Positions 21,201-35,322 of a stretch of DNA of 64,000 bases are shown one piece after another. The translations under genes and the position numbers were made by a program. The notes beneath the pieces were generated by a model. The model was not told where the DNA came from. It did no database searches and saw only the letters and a list, made by a program, of their open reading frames with translations. This DNA comes from Magallana gigas (lineage: Eukaryota): NCBI RefSeq assembly GCF_963853765.1, contig NC_088860.1, positions 20,708,001-20,772,000 of the forward strand, written 5' to 3'. The first letter of the stretch is position 1. Each line of letters opens with the position of its first letter.

Positions 21201-23090
21201 TATGTGATCAAATACAATAAGGTATAACACAATACATTGTCATATCATACGTTACAATATCATATCTCATTATTGTTTATTATGGTATTTTATTGTATTA
21301 TATGATATATATTATATATATGACATGATGCAATATTTAATTTTATATCATTGAATTGATAAACATATGAACATATGATTATCATAAAAAAAATTATCAG
21401 ATGATATACAATATTTTGTCAAAACAGAATCCATGAATAACCAAGATCATAAAGTATGATTTTCATATAAAATGATAAAGGTGGTCTTATGAAGGTGATG
21501 TCTCATAAGGGTGATGCTCCGTCTCGGTGAGCTTAGTAATCTATGATTACCTATGTTTTTTCTTAAAGGAAGCTGCGCATTGACTGACATTGACAAGGAC
21601 GTGAGTAACGCTGAGTGGTGGAGCAATGATACACACCTAGTATACACCTGTCATGCGGGGTACTCCGTGCAAGGCGGGAACTTATTGCGCAACTGTACAC
21701 CAAACGGAGAGTGGAGCGGCCAACCGCCAAGCTGTACAGGTAGTTTTAACACCCCTGCGAATGTTATTGTCATTTAAATTTTAGACCACGTGGTTTTATT
21801 TGACCCTTTCAGTTTCGCAGTAAAAATCGTGCCTCGTGTTTATAGTCTATTTTAGAGAATCTAGGTACTTGTATTCGAATGTAAATTCTAGAGGTTTATT
21901 GATTTTAGACCTTATTTTTATTAATTGGTGGATAAAATGTGTTCTAGAAATAAATGTGACAATACAAGAAATAGTATTTTTTCTGCTGTTGCGACAATTA
22001 TCATGCGTAGTAGAGATCCTCCCTAAGAATTAATTTTCGATCCGCTCCTGACCTAGTAATAACATCAATAATGAAACAGACTGTACTATTTTATGCAGAA
22101 TGTTCATTGAAAATGGCACGATACACTAAGTTTTTATCCAAAACATTCACCCATTATTTTTTTTAAAAACATGGTATTTCACACAACAAGCATCAAACAT
22201 GGCTATGATTTTATTAAGCAACCCAATGTTTATATTATCAACCACTCTACACGTGGTTGTACACGAACGATAACTCTGTTCTGAATATCATCGTTTAATT
22301 AAAAAACTGCTAGATAGTGAAATAAGACATACATCTTAAAATATGTTGATGTTTTAACATAAATCAAAGTAGAATATGATATGAAAATCAACCAGTACTT
22401 ACGTATTTTGAGAATATTATCCGAACATTTATACTCCCGCTCGAAATTTCACAGGAACTGGACAAATCTCGGTGAAGTCTCGCGAACTTTCATTCGAGCA
22501 CCTTTGGATTTATTACATACTTAGCAACGATAAAGAAAACATTCCGAACACATTCGCAGGGGTGTTTAAGTCATCAATTTAAAATAGCCTGAAGATTTTT
22601 CAATACCAATGAGTTGTATGGGTTTTTTCATATCATATGAAAAATATGGATATACGAGTATATTGGACCTTATTGAATATGGTTTAAATAGTTAAATAGT
22701 ATTTCAGTATATTCAGAGTGATAAAAAAAATTGCCATCGTTATCAAAATATCGTGTAAAGTACTTTTTTTTCCCTGAAAATAAAATATTGTGTATTCATG
22801 TAGAGATCACGTGTCAATGTCTTTGCGACATACCGTCGGTCGATCCGTCCACACTGAATGGTTCAGCGGCCCTAATCCAGAAGATTGAGGAGATTAAGTC
22901 CACGCTGACTGTGGATCGCCGGACCACCTCCAAGTTCAACCGGAGCAGGGAGAGCGCCCCGGACCCACGCCTGTCCGCCCGGGGGATCGGGTTTGGGGTG
23001 GGGGTCACTATTTTGACCATTATTGTCTGTTTGATTTGCATACCAGATATTCCAAAGTTAGTTCAGGATATCAGGTTTGGGTGTTCATGA
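14185..23090 (+). CDS. Type-I membrane multi-lectin-like protein: signal peptide, fucolectin/galactose-binding-like, EGF-like, SUEL-like, Sushi/CCP, CxCxC stalk, TM (~455 aa)
   Basis: Exons 14185-14245 (MDTRGRVTLVFLCSFGIGAF; in-frame upstream ATG at 14176), 15391-15573, 16326-16562 (ELSGFSLFLG...PSGYSPHAKVDICNLEVLG), 16954-17067 (CRQGFYGRGCSYRCPSVCEDMCNPDNGKC), 17789-18103 (CPNPG...CPGSEVALKLHYRC), 21569-21739 (YTCHAGYSVQGGNLLRNCTPNGEWSGQPPSC), 22804-23090 (CQCLC...SAPDPRLSARGIG + TM). All introns are phase 1 and GT-AG; total 1368 nt, open to TGA. Confidence 0.85.
14417..14937. mobile_element. Kolobok-like non-autonomous element, diverged copy
   Basis: Shares internal blocks with 4187-4644 (TTAAAAGTCAAG, GAGCTTTGTTTACAAAACAAAGAATT, TGTAWCTTGCTTATAACT) and ends AAGTCCCTTTAA. 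Lies in intron 1 of gene 2. Confidence 0.7.
15656..15740. repeat. (GA)n microsatellite
   Basis: Perfect AG dinucleotide run of ~85 bp. Confidence 0.95.
17282..17735. mobile_element. ~450-bp MITE, copy 1 (copy 2 at 30529-31011)
   Basis: TATACTCTGTCCCGAGTT at the left and AACTCGGGACAGACTTTA at the right (imperfect TIR). Interior closely matches 30529-31011, e.g. CTCAAACTACGTTCATCCACTAATAT. Confidence 0.8.
18172..18258. repeat. (GA)n microsatellite
   Basis: AG dinucleotide run; source of the spurious (SL)n ORF 18080-18271. Confidence 0.95.
19020..20340 (+). repeat. Satellite-like tandem array, ~177-bp unit, ~7 copies
   Basis: GGA(G/A)GAGGTTAAGGTTTT recurs at 19164, 19341, 19518, 19695 and 19869 (spacings 177, 177, 177, 174), with more degenerate copies near 20050 and 20222. 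Confidence 0.9.
20420..21420. repeat. ~1-kb degenerate AT-rich pentamer array (ATATT/ATGAT/ATTGT)
   Basis: Continuous low-complexity tract built of motifs such as TATGA, TATTG and TACAA. Confidence 0.85.
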
Positions 23091-23156
23091 TGCACTAGTA
23101 AAGTTGAATTAGCAAGAGATGAACTTCTTGAACGAAAAGTCATCATCCATGCATTA

Positions 23157-23158
<2 letters not shown>

Positions 23159-23239
<81 letters not shown>
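23159..23239. repeat. (TA)n microsatellite
   Basis: Perfect AT run of ~80 bp in the 3' region of gene 2. Confidence 0.95.
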
Positions 23240-23243
<4 letters not shown>

Positions 23244-24036
23244 AGAAGGATCAGTATTGTTGAATAATTATTGTTTGAGATGTATGGTTTTTTTGTTGAC
23301 TCGTACATATGTATTTTTATTTAAACAAAACCATCGTGTATTTCAGGTATTTTTAATAACAAAAAAATCATTATTAGATTATTCAAAATGTCAGCGAACT
23401 TGATGATAAATTCTTATTGAAGTAATAGAGACCACCGTTTTGAACAATACAATCAATATTTGCGTAGCCTAATTGCTTTTGCCTTCAAATTAATAAAGAC
23501 TGCATGATTGCAAACAAAAACACCCCTCTAAACCCCCCCCCCCAAAAAAAAAAAAAAAACCCATCCCCCCCAAAAAAAAACGTGGCCAAGTTGACTGTAT
23601 TAAAAAGTTTAGAAAATACGGTATAATAACTTAGTATAAAATTGAATAGAAATATTCAGTGCTCATTGATTTTAAGTATTGTCCCGATCATCTTTTATTC
23701 ATATTGCATGTACATGTAGTTATTACTAACATTAGGGAATATTATGATTACATTTGATTGACGCTCATATCAATAACATTGGTCAATCAGACATTATAAA
23801 ACAAAGATTATTTCAAATTACATATTCGATGTACATAAAATTATAACATTTTGTAATAAAATGAATCATAGAAAACACAGAAATCGTAACTTTGATGTCT
23901 CTGCACCTATACTGAATACCCACAGTCGAGTTTACAAGTATCAAGTAAAATCATTTTAAAATTTACAATAAGATTTATAAAACGTATTTACATGTTATGT
24001 TGATTGTATATGTACAGAAATGAAATTTTTCTTCTA

Positions 24037-26625
24037 TCATAATTGTGTGTCATTATCATTATATGGATTTTCCACGTTATTGTTTTTGCTCTCGTTGAGT
24101 AAAATATCTTCGTTTGAGTTAAAAGCACACTTTATGTCCTCCAAATTGCTCGTTCCAGTGTTCTGCTTGCTCTGCTCAGAACTATCACGCGTCAAACGAT
24201 GTCCGCATCGATCACAGAATGTATTTCCCGCCACATAGGTCGAATTATTGCAGTCACTCTCGTGTTCCTTTATATAATTATGTTTTTGTCTTTTCTTTTT
24301 CTTTCTCCTTGCGAAGTGTTGGCAATGTAGATGGAGCGTCCCTATGTCCAATAAGACAACCCCTCCGACCATTGACACGATTATCACAACAGCTACGACG
24401 CCGACGCTCGTGGCCGAGGGACGCGTGTCGATGACGCTTTGTTTTGACGCAAGGCGTTTCTTTTCGCGGATCTTTGTTCCCAATTCCACCAGTTCTCGCT
24501 GAATGACTTCGAACGTTGTTTCAGTGGTTGTTTGCGATTGTGTACTAGGGTCTGTTAGTTCTTCTAAGACGCATCCAAGGAATAAAAAATAAACATATCA
24601 TTTAATTTGTACCCCAATGGCTGTTTATTTACCTGCATGTTTAATAATTGAGATTACTATGAAATACATAATTTGGTGCCTGTCATTTATCAAATTCTCA
24701 ATATTAACCTTTATATACACCTTTAATTTTTTGCTGACAAATCAATTGATTAATGGGACATTAAATAAATTTTAACTTTTTCACTTGTAATTTCAGGAAA
24801 TTAGAATACGCGTACAATCATATCATACCTGTTGTCACTATTGTTGTTGGTAGTGCTTTCGTTGTTGTTGACAGAAGGAAGTCATCAATACCTTTCAAAA
24901 TTTGCAAAATATAACATGAACTAAACTGATAATTTATTTGATAAAACATTAAACTCAAAAAAATTATGAAATGTGTTTTCACAGTATTTACCAAAATAGC
25001 ATTTTCTGTGATAATAATCCCAGCCTCTTACGTCTTGTAGAAAATATTGACTTTCCGTCCACCTATTGACGTCACTGATTTGACAAACCTGATTTTCTGC
25101 ATTATATTCAAATGAGCGACACGTGACTTGAGTTGACGAATTGCAAACGTGGTAACATTCTGAAAGGGTGGTGTTAGCCAAAACGAGTTTGTTATGAGAT
25201 ACAATCACCGATGCAACTTCCTTCTGGTATCTGCAAATATCTGGGAGTGAAAAGAGAATGGTGTTATAAAAAAGGACCTAAAAGATACCTATTTTGATTA
25301 GAATCACAAAAAACTTGTATAACGTCATTGGAATTTACCTTCTCTAAACTGACAGATAAAAGGCTTAGCTTCGTAGCAGAATCCTTCATACCACCAGTAG
25401 GGAGATTTCAAAGCTACCGACGCACATTTATGTGATGTGTCATATTCTTTTGGTTCATATTTCCAATGGCTTACATTGGGTTGATCTCCATTTATCCAAC
25501 TCCAATCCTTATTCTCTTCCCGCGAAAGTCCAATCCACAAAGTCTCTAAACTATAGATATCCATTCATTTGCTTTACTACATCATGAAAAGATTTCAAAT
25601 TCGATTGTAAAAATATGAAATACATGTACATGTATGTACATTATACATGTATATTCATTTGGCTTGATGAGCAACATACTTGTCGGATGACGTAAGGTTT
25701 GCCTCTGGAATAATGGATTTGTCGTTCAAAACAATCAGACTTCCTCCTTTTGATTGACAAAACTCTTTGGCTCTTGGCCATGACAATAGATTGTCGTACT
25801 TCAAGATTCTCAGTGGTTGTGGTGCCTCTGACTTTACTGGATCAAATAAATCGACATACTTGTTATGCTTTGAAATTTGAGAACATGAAAGATCATTAAT
25901 ATTTGATTGATTGACAATATCAGGAACAAGTCTCTACTTTCGGACTTTCTTAGAAGTACCTTTGCTTTTTGTGGTATTGGTTTCAATAGAAACAGGTGAC
26001 GTCATTGATGACGTAATAGGTCGGGAAGGTGTAGTCGTTGTGTACTCTTGCTGAAGCAAAGCTGAAATTAAAATAGTTTTTTTTGCAGATATATAGAATA
26101 TCATAAACATTTATTTTACACAAAAATAATATAAATACCTGAAATACCTTAAATATCATTATTGGATTTCCTTTTGGAATATTATATATATTATTATAGT
26201 ATTTGTAAACCATGACAATAGTATGGTAGTGCTATATACGTTTCGTTCAAATAGAAAGATGTTATATTAACAACTGGGTTATTTAAACGTTCAGAGAGAA
26301 AAATATAGTATTTGTGGTAACAGACAGACCCTATTATAATCCTGCATACATGTAATTACATGAGATCAAGTCTTACCAGTAACGCAGGATTTATGGTAGT
26401 AATCCCAACTTGGGACGTTGAAGGCGAACTGGTTAGTTTCCCGCCACCTGTTGGTGTCTGACAGCTGACAGTACTGACTGCCAGGGTTATACTCGAAGCT
26501 ACGACACGTGATCTCGGTGACAGTCTCGCACAGGTCGTGACAGCGTTGCCACATGATCGCGGTTATCGTGAGAACGTCGTTACTTTGGATCATGTTTTGT
26601 TCGTATATCCTATACCGACACTGTC
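24037..26625 (-). CDS. PAN/apple, C-type lectin, PAN/apple, stalk, TM and cytoplasmic-tail membrane protein (5'-partial)
   Basis: Minus-strand exons 26625-26377 (PAN: CHDLCETVTEITCRSFEYNPGSQYCQLS...WDYYH), 25836-25680 and 25550-25339 (CTL: LSWPRAKEFCQSKGGSL...WIGLS...WSWING...CA...WYEGFCYEAKPFICQ), 25240-24992 (PAN), 24563-24037 (SVIDTRPSATSVG + TM + RRKKKKR + tail). Phases 1/1/2/1/1 are consistent. The signal-peptide exon is not firmly located. Confidence 0.85.
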
Positions 26626-31810: not shown

Positions 31811-34800
31811 TGGTATGTTTACAAATAATTTATAGGCATTGTATCATTAATATTCTAATAATCTTTTTTAAATAGATTTAAACACACCCTTGTTTATTTA
31901 AAGATTTAAAGCATTTATTACCCGTTTCCCTATGTTCCTTCTGTACTCATAAACACGCATTAATTTTTCAAATTGAACTATTTTTTCCCTCGGAATTTCA
32001 TCTACAGGCATCAGACTCCGTGCTTATCCTTTGTTTATGTCGCATACCATCGCAAGAGTTATCGTTCGTTCCTGTACTATCAAAAACATAAATCTACCAC
32101 TTGCTATCTTTGCTATAGGCATTTTCAATGGATAATTAAAAACGATGAAGTAAAAATTTACAGACAAGCTACAGTTCTATTATCAAAAACGATGTTTAAA
32201 CGGGGGTCGAACAGTGTGTGGGGGGGGGGGGTTGTGTTGTAGAGTTGTGTGCCCTTAGTTTATATAACATCCGATAGTTTACCATGAAAAAGGGCAGGAA
32301 TTTGACCTATGACGTAGAAGGTCATGAAAGCAATTGCAATAGGCGCTTCCGCCTAAAAAGGAATGGAACACTTTTCACAGATAGTCATTTTAGCCATGAA
32401 GCAGCATTTGAGGGGCAATTTCTGACGTGTATTTTTTTTTACCTTTTGATTAACGTCTTTTCGAGATCGAGGTCGATCGTACCATACACAATAAGACCAA
32501 TCAAATTCTGCCAGGGGATCATGATAAGATCAATTAAAGACTGTCAAAAGATTCCCTTGCGTCAGTGATATATGGACCAGTGTGACGTAATACGATGTTT
32601 ATGATGCTTTACCAATTGTCAAATTCTGACAGAAGTTAATCAGATACAGCCATGATTAAAAGGTGTGCTGAAAGATAGACATCATTAACCGTGTTTATAA
32701 AGTTTCAAAAGAAGAAGAGTCCCTTTGACATAGGTGACATAGAAATCAATTAACGTATAACCAAGGTGCACTGATAATATGAAATATCAGTAAAAATATC
32801 TTTGATAGACCTGTTATTAAGGGCAAGCGTTCAATTTTTAACTCTTTGAACTATTTTGGATGAACTGTTATCACTGTGTCTAGATTTAGATTTTTTTTTG
32901 CTTGGAATCAAGTGTTAAACATTCAGTATCAAACAACTGTCTCATCACTGTTCTCGGGTACCACTTGTCTTTACTTTCTACAAACTTGTCATAATAATGT
33001 TACGATTTACTTTTAGACTACCTCAAAACCACTGTTCTTTTACATATGTTATTGTAACCAAATACCACAAAATGTTGGTTATTTTATTATTGTCAATATC
33101 ACCTTTTTGTGTTTCCACTTCAATCTTATTAAAAGATGTTCAACAGGAACTTGTCAAACTTGTTGATATGAAGATTAGTACGATGAAAGCAAAGACAGGC
33201 AATAAAGAACCAACTATAGATGAAAGCATATGCTAGACTTCCATGGACAGCCATAATCGCCTCCCATTAAAGCGGCGACGTTTGAAAATAATAGATTGGA
33301 AGACATGAAAATTAATATTAGTTTTTTTTAGTGTTTTTTTCCACCGTATTTACTGGGGTTTATTTCCATGAAATCTTAACCACACTAAAAATAATATTAC
33401 GCATCGAATAAATTAAAATATAGTCTATTAATTGTTTGCCTAAACAGAAAGGGTTGAAAAATTAGAGCCACGGCGGAGTTATTTATCAGGCACGTAGCAT
33501 CATTTTTCAAAGTAAAGGGGCCTGAAAAATTGGTGCATAAGTGAAGGGGTCAACCCCACCCCCACCTACTCCTCAATTGCTTCGTTGCTCTTAGTCGACA
33601 AAGTTGAACTATATATTAAAAATGATTACCTTTCTGATACTGACACATAAAAGGTAGCGCTTGTTGGCATGGAAACAAAGACATCGTTCTATTGGAATTG
33701 AGAGTTATGGTACTACAGTAATTCCAAGGTTGACCATTCGGATTTGTATCTTTTATGTTATTCCAGACCGTGATATTTCTGCAATTAAGAAAAATATGAT
33801 AAACTTTTTTTCATGTATTGGTTAGTTGATTCTTTTTTTAATTAAAAAAAAAATGGGCAAAATTTGTATTTGAAAAATAAAACACCAAATAATATCCTTA
33901 ATACAAAGTCAGTAAGTAAAGTAACTTAATCTAGTTGCGAAACTTTTCTTCGACAAATTGATATACATATGTATATTTTTTTTTAATGCGGAAAGACCCT
34001 TCTATAGCTGTTAAACAGCGTCTCATAAATGTTATGCACTGCTATTATATAATCAAACAGGGTCAATAAACGAACGCAGCAAAGATATGAATAACAGGAA
34101 ACGTTATAAAAAGGGTTCTTTATAAATCCGATACTTTAAATGAAAGAAAATGTTCCAAAAAGTGTATTATTGTATTCAAAAAGTCCTAAACGTTCACCTT
34201 GGGGAACAATTTGGAAAATCTTGGATTAACAAAAGTGCAAACATCTCAGAGTTTTGCTGCGAGCACTGGAATTACATAATACTTAGAAATGCGCAACATG
34301 AGTAATAAACTCATGGCTTTGTGTGTTTTTGTGTATTAACCAAAGTAAACGACTTCGTTTGTTTTAATAACAGTCCCAGATAATAGTCCCATTATAAACA
34401 ATGTTCAAATCAAAGCAAGGTTTTGCAGTCCGTAAACTTGCGTTTGCGTTTTTTTTTCTTTAAAAATTCAAACCAGAAATCATTCGCAGGAAAACGATTT
34501 ACAGAGTAAACAAAATGTTGTATAAAAAGTTCTGTAAATGCTCACTTTAATTCAATTCACCATAAGATTACTTTCTAAATATTCTTTATCCTCGGATTAT
34601 GCGAACTACATTTGCAAGTTTGCAAGTAAAATTTTGAGAAAGACTGGATAGAAGTATTCCAACCTATTTCGATTTCAAGATCTTTATGATTCCATATTTC
34701 ATTAATAAGAAAGTTCTTTCCAAAATTTTGCATTTGCTGCAAGACACTACATTAAACAAAGGACGATCAATACCAATTATTGTAAATACAGCGGGTTTGG

Positions 34801-35322
34801 TTCATAACAAAATGGATGCCCTCACTTTATCGCCGGAAGTTCTTCCAAAATGTCCATAACAGTCGATACATCCGGAAACCGGGCCAGCATTCCATCTGTC
34901 TGTGCGCATGTCTGACTTGCATCATTCCAGTTTCGTCTTTCGCTGTAGTACACATAGGTCAAGGGAGTGAATTCCGTTTGACATGTAACTGAACACAAAA
35001 CCGTATTTTATTATCGTATATCGTTTTCTCCGGCTAAATGTACCCGAATTTAATTTCATTGTAGTAACAGGTTAAAGAATATAAATTGATATAATGAGTA
35101 TCGTATGCAGTTAAAAAATGAATCCAAGTGGAATTTTGTATTACGCTTTGCACTGCATTGATATTATCATCAATAAACTTCAAGTGCATTTCTGCCTTGA
35201 ATAGGTATCATGGTTGAATATTATAGTTTGAATAATAACTATTTTTTTTAACTATTGAATGTTGCTTTATCTGCTAATTTTTTACTTGATAACAGTAACT
35301 TTTCATACTGAAACATACTCAC

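Follow-up and report, generated by a model that had tools for sequence, protein, structure and literature searches.

Two convergent genes of the oyster Magallana gigas, termed here gene 2 (plus strand) and gene 3 (minus strand), lie tail to tail in the 64,000-nt stretch of DNA that is referred to below as the window (NC_088860.1, positions 20,708,001 to 20,772,000; C8:20708001-20772000 in the genome searches). Sequence comparison identifies their terminal exons as diverged copies of one old and unnamed C-terminal membrane-anchor cassette of type-I mollusc proteins, homologous to each other via a large family, with the significant shared part limited to a core of 41 aligned columns. In its full form, the cassette consists of a CxCxC cluster, an N-glycosylation sequon, a short amphipathic helix, a basic R-K-K patch, the juxtamembrane motif [SC]-A-x-D-x-R-P-S-A-x-x-[IV]-G, a helix that is uncharged and constant in length, an invariant Asp with [LI]-P, and a short basic juxtamembrane helix. 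The universal core, which is kept in gene 3, begins with the D-x-R motif and extends as far as the closing Asp. Usually the cassette occupies the last exon and is entered in phase 1. Tandem duplication and exon shuffling have spread it under many different heads, most of them glycan-binding or of the adhesion type. The features on which the comparison of the two genes rests are as follows.

22804..23090, plus strand: terminal exon of gene 2, entered in phase 1, with the full cassette, a tail of 13 aa and the stop codon at 23088-23090.
24037..24563, minus strand: terminal exon of gene 3, entered in phase 1, with a divergent cassette lacking CxCxC, a tail of 102 aa and the stop codon at 24039-24037.
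24346..24438, minus strand: conserved core of gene 3, S43 to D73, reading S-V-I-D-T-R-P-S-A-T-S-V-G followed by the helix and Asp (hhalign, 98.6% probability).
24040..24345, minus strand: cytoplasmic tail of gene 3, with a polybasic RRKKKKRQK, CDRC and several tyrosines (from the translation).

The positions and translations of both exons agree with those given in an initial annotation of this DNA. The acceptor AG lies at 22802-22803 in front of the gene 2 exon and is read from 24565-24564 in front of that of gene 3. With residues counted from the first full codon (22806), the gene 2 exon encodes ITCQCLCD...LIQKIEEIKSTLTV...FNRSRESAPDPRLSARGIG, then a hydrophobic stretch, D81 and IPKLVQDIRFGCS. 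The gene 3 exon encodes ...FEVIQRELVELGTKIREKKRLASKQSVIDTRPSATSVG, then a hydrophobic stretch, an Asp and the tail, and the G-to-D spacing in its core, taken directly from the sequence, is 18. Spliced RNA contigs bear out the proposed phase-1 entry of both exons: the gene 2 joint 21739|22804 is present in a spliced contig of run X1 (RNA-type), and the gene 3 joints 24829|24563, 24992|24891 and 25339|25240 are present in contigs of runs X13 (a declared RNA library) and X1. Likewise, the motif S-x-x-D-x-R-x-S-A-x-x-[IV]-G, the transmembrane helix and the closing Asp that had been described as common to the two genes are found in both translations, and the tails, annotated as about 13 and about 100 aa, measure 13 aa in gene 2 and about 102 aa in gene 3, the latter with the basic stretch, Cys pair and tyrosines listed above. 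A shared DPST, which had also been cited, sits in a non-conserved stretch of the family alignment and does not belong to the resemblance.

The claim that the two exons align holds for profiles and fails for single sequences. Direct BLASTP of the gene 2 exon against the gene 3 exon gave no alignment at E ≤ 100; taken alone, this result spoke against the resemblance, and the family profile reversed it. An independent profile that drew on 47 paralogues retrieved by gene 2 only, and from which both window exons were excluded, scored the gene 3 exon at 43.1 bits (E 1.5e-15), as compared to a maximum of 19.4 bits in 2000 shuffles in which the stalk, helix and tail blocks were kept apart. The gene 2 exon scored 95 bits with the family profile, and these two exons were the only profile matches among the 1543 reading frames of the window. 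The annotation had left the similarity to be judged by profile-profile comparison, and there it proved significant: a subfamily profile, made from gene 3 and four paralogues retrieved exclusively by gene 3, was aligned by hhalign to the gene-2 family profile with 98.6% probability and an E-value of 5.5e-16 over 41 columns. These columns comprise the juxtamembrane motif, the helix and the closing Asp, so the annotated motif does form the core that is truly shared; the stalk helix of gene 3 falls outside of them. A six-frame search of the oyster's own genome (564 Mb) yielded at least 150 matches with the gene 2 exon and 61 with the gene 3 exon, and 38 of the 62 reading frames that were fetched were matched by both. 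Between the two window modules themselves, identity is no more than 22-25%, and each falls in a different subfamily.

Searched with the family profile, the same genome gave 238 first-look candidates, and all 150 that were scored reached E ≤ 2.3e-14; the gene 3 copy is too divergent to be among these 150. Each of the ten chromosomes carries copies of the cassette; these are for the most part open frames and are mostly arranged in tandem on one strand. In a library of 1.84 billion representative proteins, 2814 clusters matched at E ≤ 1e-3 and 1877 at E ≤ 1e-10, and in most of the 150 library matches listed the module is located at the C-terminal end or close to it. All named organisms are molluscs and include several bivalve orders: oysters (Saccostrea, Magallana), scallops (Argopecten, Ylistrum), mussels (Mytilus), an ark clam (Tegillarca), Mactra and the chiton Liolophura. 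The ESM Atlas clusters of known phylum are likewise all from Mollusca. Matches in AlphaFold DB clusters align at their C-termini with 26-43% identity; judged by accession prefix, some of them would be Octopus and Pomacea entries, and on this ground the range is probably all of Mollusca. No family member from outside Mollusca occurred among the named sources, a search that did not extend to labelled non-mollusc proteomes. A word-index search for protein homologues, which has poor recall, returned 6 proteins by region and 10 with an alignment, all of them from oyster or without an organism. Family members carry source names such as 'uncharacterized', 'mucin-22-like', 'serine-rich adhesin-like' and similar, in keeping with the annotation's statement that the motif occurs in uncharacterized mollusc proteins.

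Some copies show unusual arrangements. The database gene models P0001, P0002, P0003, P0008, P0017 and P0133 contain two cassettes each; they are probably tandem neighbours fused by gene prediction, because each cassette ends in a membrane helix. On chromosome 4, two cassette exons on opposite strands (C4:7225211-7225492, minus, and C4:7227933-7228214, plus) lie 2.5 kb apart and point away from each other, and each would fall inside the expected body of the other gene; the two may represent an inverted duplication or nested genes.

The anatomy of the cassette was derived from 129 aligned sequences (about 30-35% identity, gene 2 numbering) and from structure prediction, scored by the predicted local distance difference test (pLDDT). 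In the gene 2 exon, its parts are located as follows.

22812..22826, plus strand: CxCxC cluster, C3, C5 and C7 of the exon (column conservation).
22851..22907, plus strand: amphipathic ectodomain helix, residues 16-34, with core L23, I27, I30 and L34 (AlphaFold2 helices 16-19 and 21-34; column conservation).
22941..22991, plus strand: basic patch and juxtamembrane motif, R46 to G62, including D53, R55, S57, A58 and G62 (conservation in the 129 sequences).
22974..23048, plus strand: transmembrane helix S57-P80 and the closing invariant D81 (AlphaFold2 helix 56-78, pLDDT 86-95; uncharged G62-D81 spacing).

Three residues, R55, G62 and D81, are invariant, and C3, C5, L34, R46, D53 and S57 are conserved in at least 90% of the sequences. 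Cys is present at position 3 in 94%, at position 5 in 95% and at position 7 in 88%; the complete CxCxC occurs in 93 of the 129 sequences and CxC in a further 26, at 41-52 residues ahead of D53, and an N-x-[TS] sequon is found in 104. The amphipathic helix that follows has the consensus E-E-L23-x-x-K-I27-E-E-I30-K-K-E-L34-T-V36, in which the hydrophobic core residues L23, I27, I30 and L34 are spaced 4-3-4 over about two heptads. After K38, [LT]41 and S42 come R46 (94%) with two Lys, [SC]50, [AV]51, D53 (98%), R55, P56, S57 (91%), Ala (69%) or Ser (26%) at position 58, [IV]61, G62 and G66 (89%). The inner end consists of I77, V78 and D81, followed by [LIF], P, L85 and basic residues. The stretch separating G62 from D81 is 18 or 19 residues long in every case and uncharged throughout (128 of 128 sequences). 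Along the transmembrane helix, conservation has a periodicity with its maximum near 95-100 degrees per residue (permutation p=0.004), so one face of the helix is conserved.

AlphaFold2 with the family alignment returned a model of mean pLDDT 77, which contains the ectodomain helix (16-34), a short helix (42-48), the membrane helix starting from P56/S57 (56-78), a break or kink at D81-I-P, and a juxtamembrane helix (81-91). On this model, D-x-R-P-S-A would cap the membrane helix where it meets the outer interface, and D81-[LI]-P would terminate it at the inner one. An acidic dileucine motif, D81-x3-L-[LIV], was set aside as a candidate because of its position directly at the membrane and the variability of the residue that follows L85.

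The cassette does not correspond to any characterized domain that we could find, as the annotation had anticipated: Pfam contains no family for it, no solved relative turned up, and the source annotations that were seen give it no name. Neither window exon came near a Pfam gathering score, the best being DUF5665 with 16 bits (cutoff 27) and EphA2_TM with 13.6 bits (cutoff 28.9), and the Pfam matches in 71 long family members are all to known head-type or unrelated families, with none for the module. The family profile found no solved relative in the PDB, where the best match was the serotonin receptor 1D (E 0.012). This match, in which positions 43-82 of profile A3 ('RKK-SA-D-RPSA--IG' and the helix) resemble the loop-3/helix-6 junction of 5-HT1D, 'RKRISAARERKATKILG', has the opposite topology and was treated as chance. 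A literature search with motif strings, oyster transmembrane lectins and snail transmembrane clusters returned no description of the module. The cassette is a real, very large, mollusc-wide domain family for which no name or description was found.

The heads attached to the cassette are of many unrelated and largely glycan-binding kinds, which supports the earlier view of one stalk-transmembrane module under shuffled heads. Pfam domains in the 71 long matches are Lectin_C (14), F5_F8_type_C (8), Sushi (8), IgGFc_binding (7), Ephrin_rec_like (6), FAMeT (3), WSC (3), Ig and PAN; many heads are without a known domain or are Ser/Thr-rich stalks, and the AlphaFold DB entries add TNFR-Cys, Apple and alpha-2-macroglobulin-like names. 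In the window, the ectodomain of gene 3 consists of PAN, C-type lectin and PAN domains (Pfam), exactly as annotated. The composition proposed for gene 2 (fucolectin, EGF, SUEL and Sushi) was recovered in part: Pfam detects Sushi twice (E 1e-6 and 0.017) together with a weak galactose-binding-like signal (E 0.042), and the N-terminal exons gave weak signals of this latter type against Pfam and PDB, with no recovery of EGF or SUEL. Upstream exons of both genes are located as follows.

21569..21739, plus strand: penultimate exon of gene 2, Sushi domain, 171 nt (Pfam Sushi E 1e-6; contig record 2, run X1).
24829..24891, minus strand: Thr-rich stalk mini-exon of gene 3, 63 nt, bounded by phase 1 on both sides (runs X13, X21 and X22 carry its joints; splice dinucleotides checked).
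24992..25240, minus strand: PAN-domain exon of gene 3, 249 nt, symmetric phase 1-1 (Pfam PAN_1 E 1.1e-8; joints).

Heads are related in 53 of the 68 protein pairs whose modules share 50% identity or more, as compared to only 39 of 1486 pairs below that threshold; therefore, the recent spread of the cassette is by gene duplication and the older spread by head exchange. The upstream exons are symmetric 1-1 (the 63-nt stalk, the 249-nt PAN and the 171-nt Sushi, the last inferred, its 5' edge being taken from the start of a contig piece), and a heuristic assignment of exon phase in paralogues gave phase 1 in 12 of 14. These phases fit exon shuffling of a phase-1 module. According to Patthy's exon-shuffling rule, the mobile modules of animal extracellular proteins are of phase 1-1. 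The cassette shares with them the phase-1 entry, the symmetric upstream exons and the occurrence of the same unit under many heads; it differs from them in being a 3'-terminal membrane anchor and not an internal symmetric module, and in owing much of its spread to tandem duplication of whole genes.

The cytoplasmic tails that follow D81 are short (median 22 aa, interquartile range 16-29), basic (net charge +2.3) and of low complexity. A pattern resembling the immunoreceptor tyrosine-based activation motif occurs in 1 of 153 tails, and Pfam detected no kinase, TIR or death domains among the 71 long matches. The long tail of gene 3 gave nothing below E 4.5 against Pfam and has no paralogue in the whole-genome search.

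Starting from the observed homology, copy number, head diversity, phase in these two genes, fixed spacing and conserved helix face, we propose, with a probability of about 0.55, that the cassette has a role beyond anchoring: it would set the register of the helix in the membrane and mediate lateral association with itself or with a common partner, and the resulting clustering would give avidity to lectin heads of low affinity. The fixed-length helix with its one conserved face suggests lateral association, which would proceed via the [AS]58-x3-G62 face and could be homotypic or involve the common partner. The residues [AS]58 (about 95%) and G62 (100%) are small, four apart and on one face, and the cassette shares this arrangement and the conserved helix face with the small-x3-small packing of the glycophorin-A type. 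In the main subfamily, the three Cys located between the mucin-like stalk and the helix would be hard to pair within one chain; they could instead form a hinge-like ladder of interchain disulfides, where an even number of chains would be needed for all three to be bonded. Given the short tails, which lack a recognized domain, a signal would have to pass through a partner.

The oligomerization domains of matrilin, COMP and thrombospondin have a Cys pair directly before a coiled coil. Like these, the cassette has a Cys cluster before an amphipathic helix, at a distance of about 10-15 residues, between the flexible stalk and the helix with its 4-3-4 spacing, and by analogy the cluster would plausibly lead to interchain disulfides and multivalency. 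The cassette differs from these domains in that the PDB profile search detected no sequence similarity to them, its helix of about two heptads is followed by a membrane helix and not by a free C-terminus, and the Cys are missing from the gene 3 subfamily.

Homodimer prediction for the gene 2 module, run without the family alignment, gave a score of 0.02 with no verdict, which speaks neither for nor against the proposed clustering role. Several observations weigh against this role. The core of the ectodomain helix is too short for a stand-alone coiled coil, and disulfide linking cannot be the universal function of the cassette, since the gene 3 subfamily lacks CxCxC. Unlike the glycophorin-A type, the cassette has a single conserved small-x3-small pair, at the outer end of the helix, with the second glycine usually three residues further on and not four. 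A signal peptide was seen in only 16 of 60 long gene models, so that the type-I topology rests mainly on the nature of the heads and on the sequons. Finally, the strong conservation could equally be compatible with recognition by protease or trafficking machinery.

More tentatively, the invariant R55, G62 and D81 together with the conserved helix face might form a universal plug that docks some 150-240 heads per oyster genome onto one common putative membrane partner. Such a partner could be a signaling adaptor, in the way that DAP12 and FcR-gamma serve vertebrate lectin receptors, or else a dedicated processing enzyme.

It is possible, though we think unlikely, that the cassette is no more than a membrane anchor handed down within a single, very large gene family and conserved under the general constraints of insertion and trafficking. 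The predominance of related heads among modules at least 50% identical (53 of 68 pairs) indicates that much of the spread was plain gene duplication, and most copies are in tandem arrays; both points favour this reading. However, three invariant residues and six more conserved in at least 90% of 129 sequences, at an overall identity of about 30-35% and across bivalves and a chiton member, together with the fixed spacing and the one conserved helix face, form a pattern that ordinary single-pass anchors do not keep.

Rather improbable, in our judgement, is a processing cassette, in which R46-K-K...D-x-R-P-S-A and the Gly-rich outer end of the helix would constitute a site for a sheddase or an intramembrane protease and the lectins would be released in soluble form. 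High conservation marks the basic patch and the small residues adjoining the membrane, the top of the helix could be destabilized by G62 and G66, and short tails without domains would suit proteins that are active as ectodomains. Furin requires Arg at P1 and P4, site-1 protease a hydrophobic P2, and rhomboid hydrophobic residues at P4 and P2', but none of these consensus patterns fits the column frequencies; the hydrophobic P2 of site-1 protease is present in only about 18% of copies. Moreover, shedding does not explain the invariant D81 on the cytoplasmic side or the fixed length of the helix.

The initial annotation had also suggested that the two genes form a short-tail/long-tail pair, and a dedicated heteromer of this kind, in which the short-tailed gene 2 product would dock via the module onto a long-tailed, signaling gene 3 product, is very improbable on the present evidence. 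A distance of 946 bp does separate the two stop codons, which are on opposite strands, and the bulk samples X1 and X13 each contain, at low level, contigs (spliced or exonic) from both genes. However, this is a family of at least 150 copies found mostly in same-strand tandem arrays, and by our own estimate more than 150 copies in 564 Mb would be expected to produce about one chance neighbour pair per genome. Among the copies listed, the only other opposite-strand pair this close is that on chromosome 4, which is arranged back to back. The modules share 22-25% identity and are members of different subfamilies, the gene 3 tail has neither a paralogue nor a recognized signaling domain, and polyA RNA depth is nil for gene 2 and 1-2 reads for the terminal exon of gene 3. 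The pairing claim is therefore not sustained. Hardly credible is a signal of the glycosylphosphatidylinositol type with attachment at S50/A51 or S57/A58 and removal of the hydrophobic stretch: small residues (S/C50, A/V51, S57, A/S58) do stand 8-12 residues or directly before a 20-residue hydrophobic stretch and many tails are short, but that stretch is followed by the invariant Asp, a conserved helix and a basic tail of median 22 aa (in some members, including gene 3, of more than 100 aa), and the residue two positions after S50 is variable (P, K, D or S) and not small.

Among known receptors, thrombomodulin and CD93 are type-I proteins composed of a lectin domain, Sushi/EGF domains, a mucin stalk, a membrane helix and a short tail. 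The cassette receptors resemble them in architecture and in their likely role as surface glycan or ligand receptors on a glycosylated stalk, whereas no homology of the anchor region was detected (Pfam, PDB) and the mollusc cassette spans unrelated head families. The nearest biological parallel appears to be provided by the Biomphalaria TM1 clusters at the schistosome-resistance loci PTC1/GRC, PTC2 and LG5R, which encode single-pass proteins with small cytosolic parts (PMC7494358, PMC13712769). The LG5R proteins have a signal peptide, a Cys-rich signature of the Tie2-ligand-binding type, sometimes a galactose-binding/fucolectin-like signature, and one membrane helix (PMC13712769), and the PTC2 genes were reported to be without homology outside gastropods (PMC7494358). 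Compared by their descriptions alone, the TM1 genes and the cassette genes both form mollusc clusters of single-pass proteins, and the LG5R layout is much like that of gene 2; in contrast to the cassette family, no shared juxtamembrane motif is described for TM1 in these papers.

The remainder of the window contains several further features. Upstream of gene 2, exon-like frames with ABC-transporter signatures at 1253-9653 (plus strand) probably belong to an ABCC/MRP-type transporter gene, judging from their translations. The introns of gene 2 contain long GA-rich microsatellites (15600-15804 and 18041-18321, plus strand), whose open frames read (RE)n or (ER)n. Very high RNA depth at 21400-21558 and 21750-22565, with 95-99% identity and numerous loose ends at recurrent positions, suggests a high-copy repeat or transposon in the last intron of gene 2, as opposed to gene 2 expression. 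Between the two stop codons, reads are cut at a (TA)n microsatellite and a poly-C/poly-A tract (23158-23240 and 23523-23581). On the minus strand, two frames at 33619-33810 and 34825-35007 resemble halves of a C-type lectin domain ('WNDASQTCAQ...' and '...CQQALPFMCQ') and may represent another lectin gene upstream of gene 3 or further 5' exons of gene 3 itself.

To our knowledge, molluscs have no adaptive immunity and possess large, poorly understood families of lectin-like surface receptors. Most of these receptors have tiny cytoplasmic tails, and for this reason their mode of signaling and clustering is largely unknown. Recognized as a new domain family, the cassette gives one annotation handle for thousands of protein clusters and a route to a common partner or protease, and it makes receptor clustering testable with a few point mutants. 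If it is present in the genes of the snail resistance loci, the cassette would have a bearing on the vector biology of schistosomiasis. Should the docking of many heads onto one common partner prove true, it would constitute an organizing principle of a mollusc-wide surface recognition repertoire, to which the transmembrane gene clusters behind schistosome resistance in snails may also belong.

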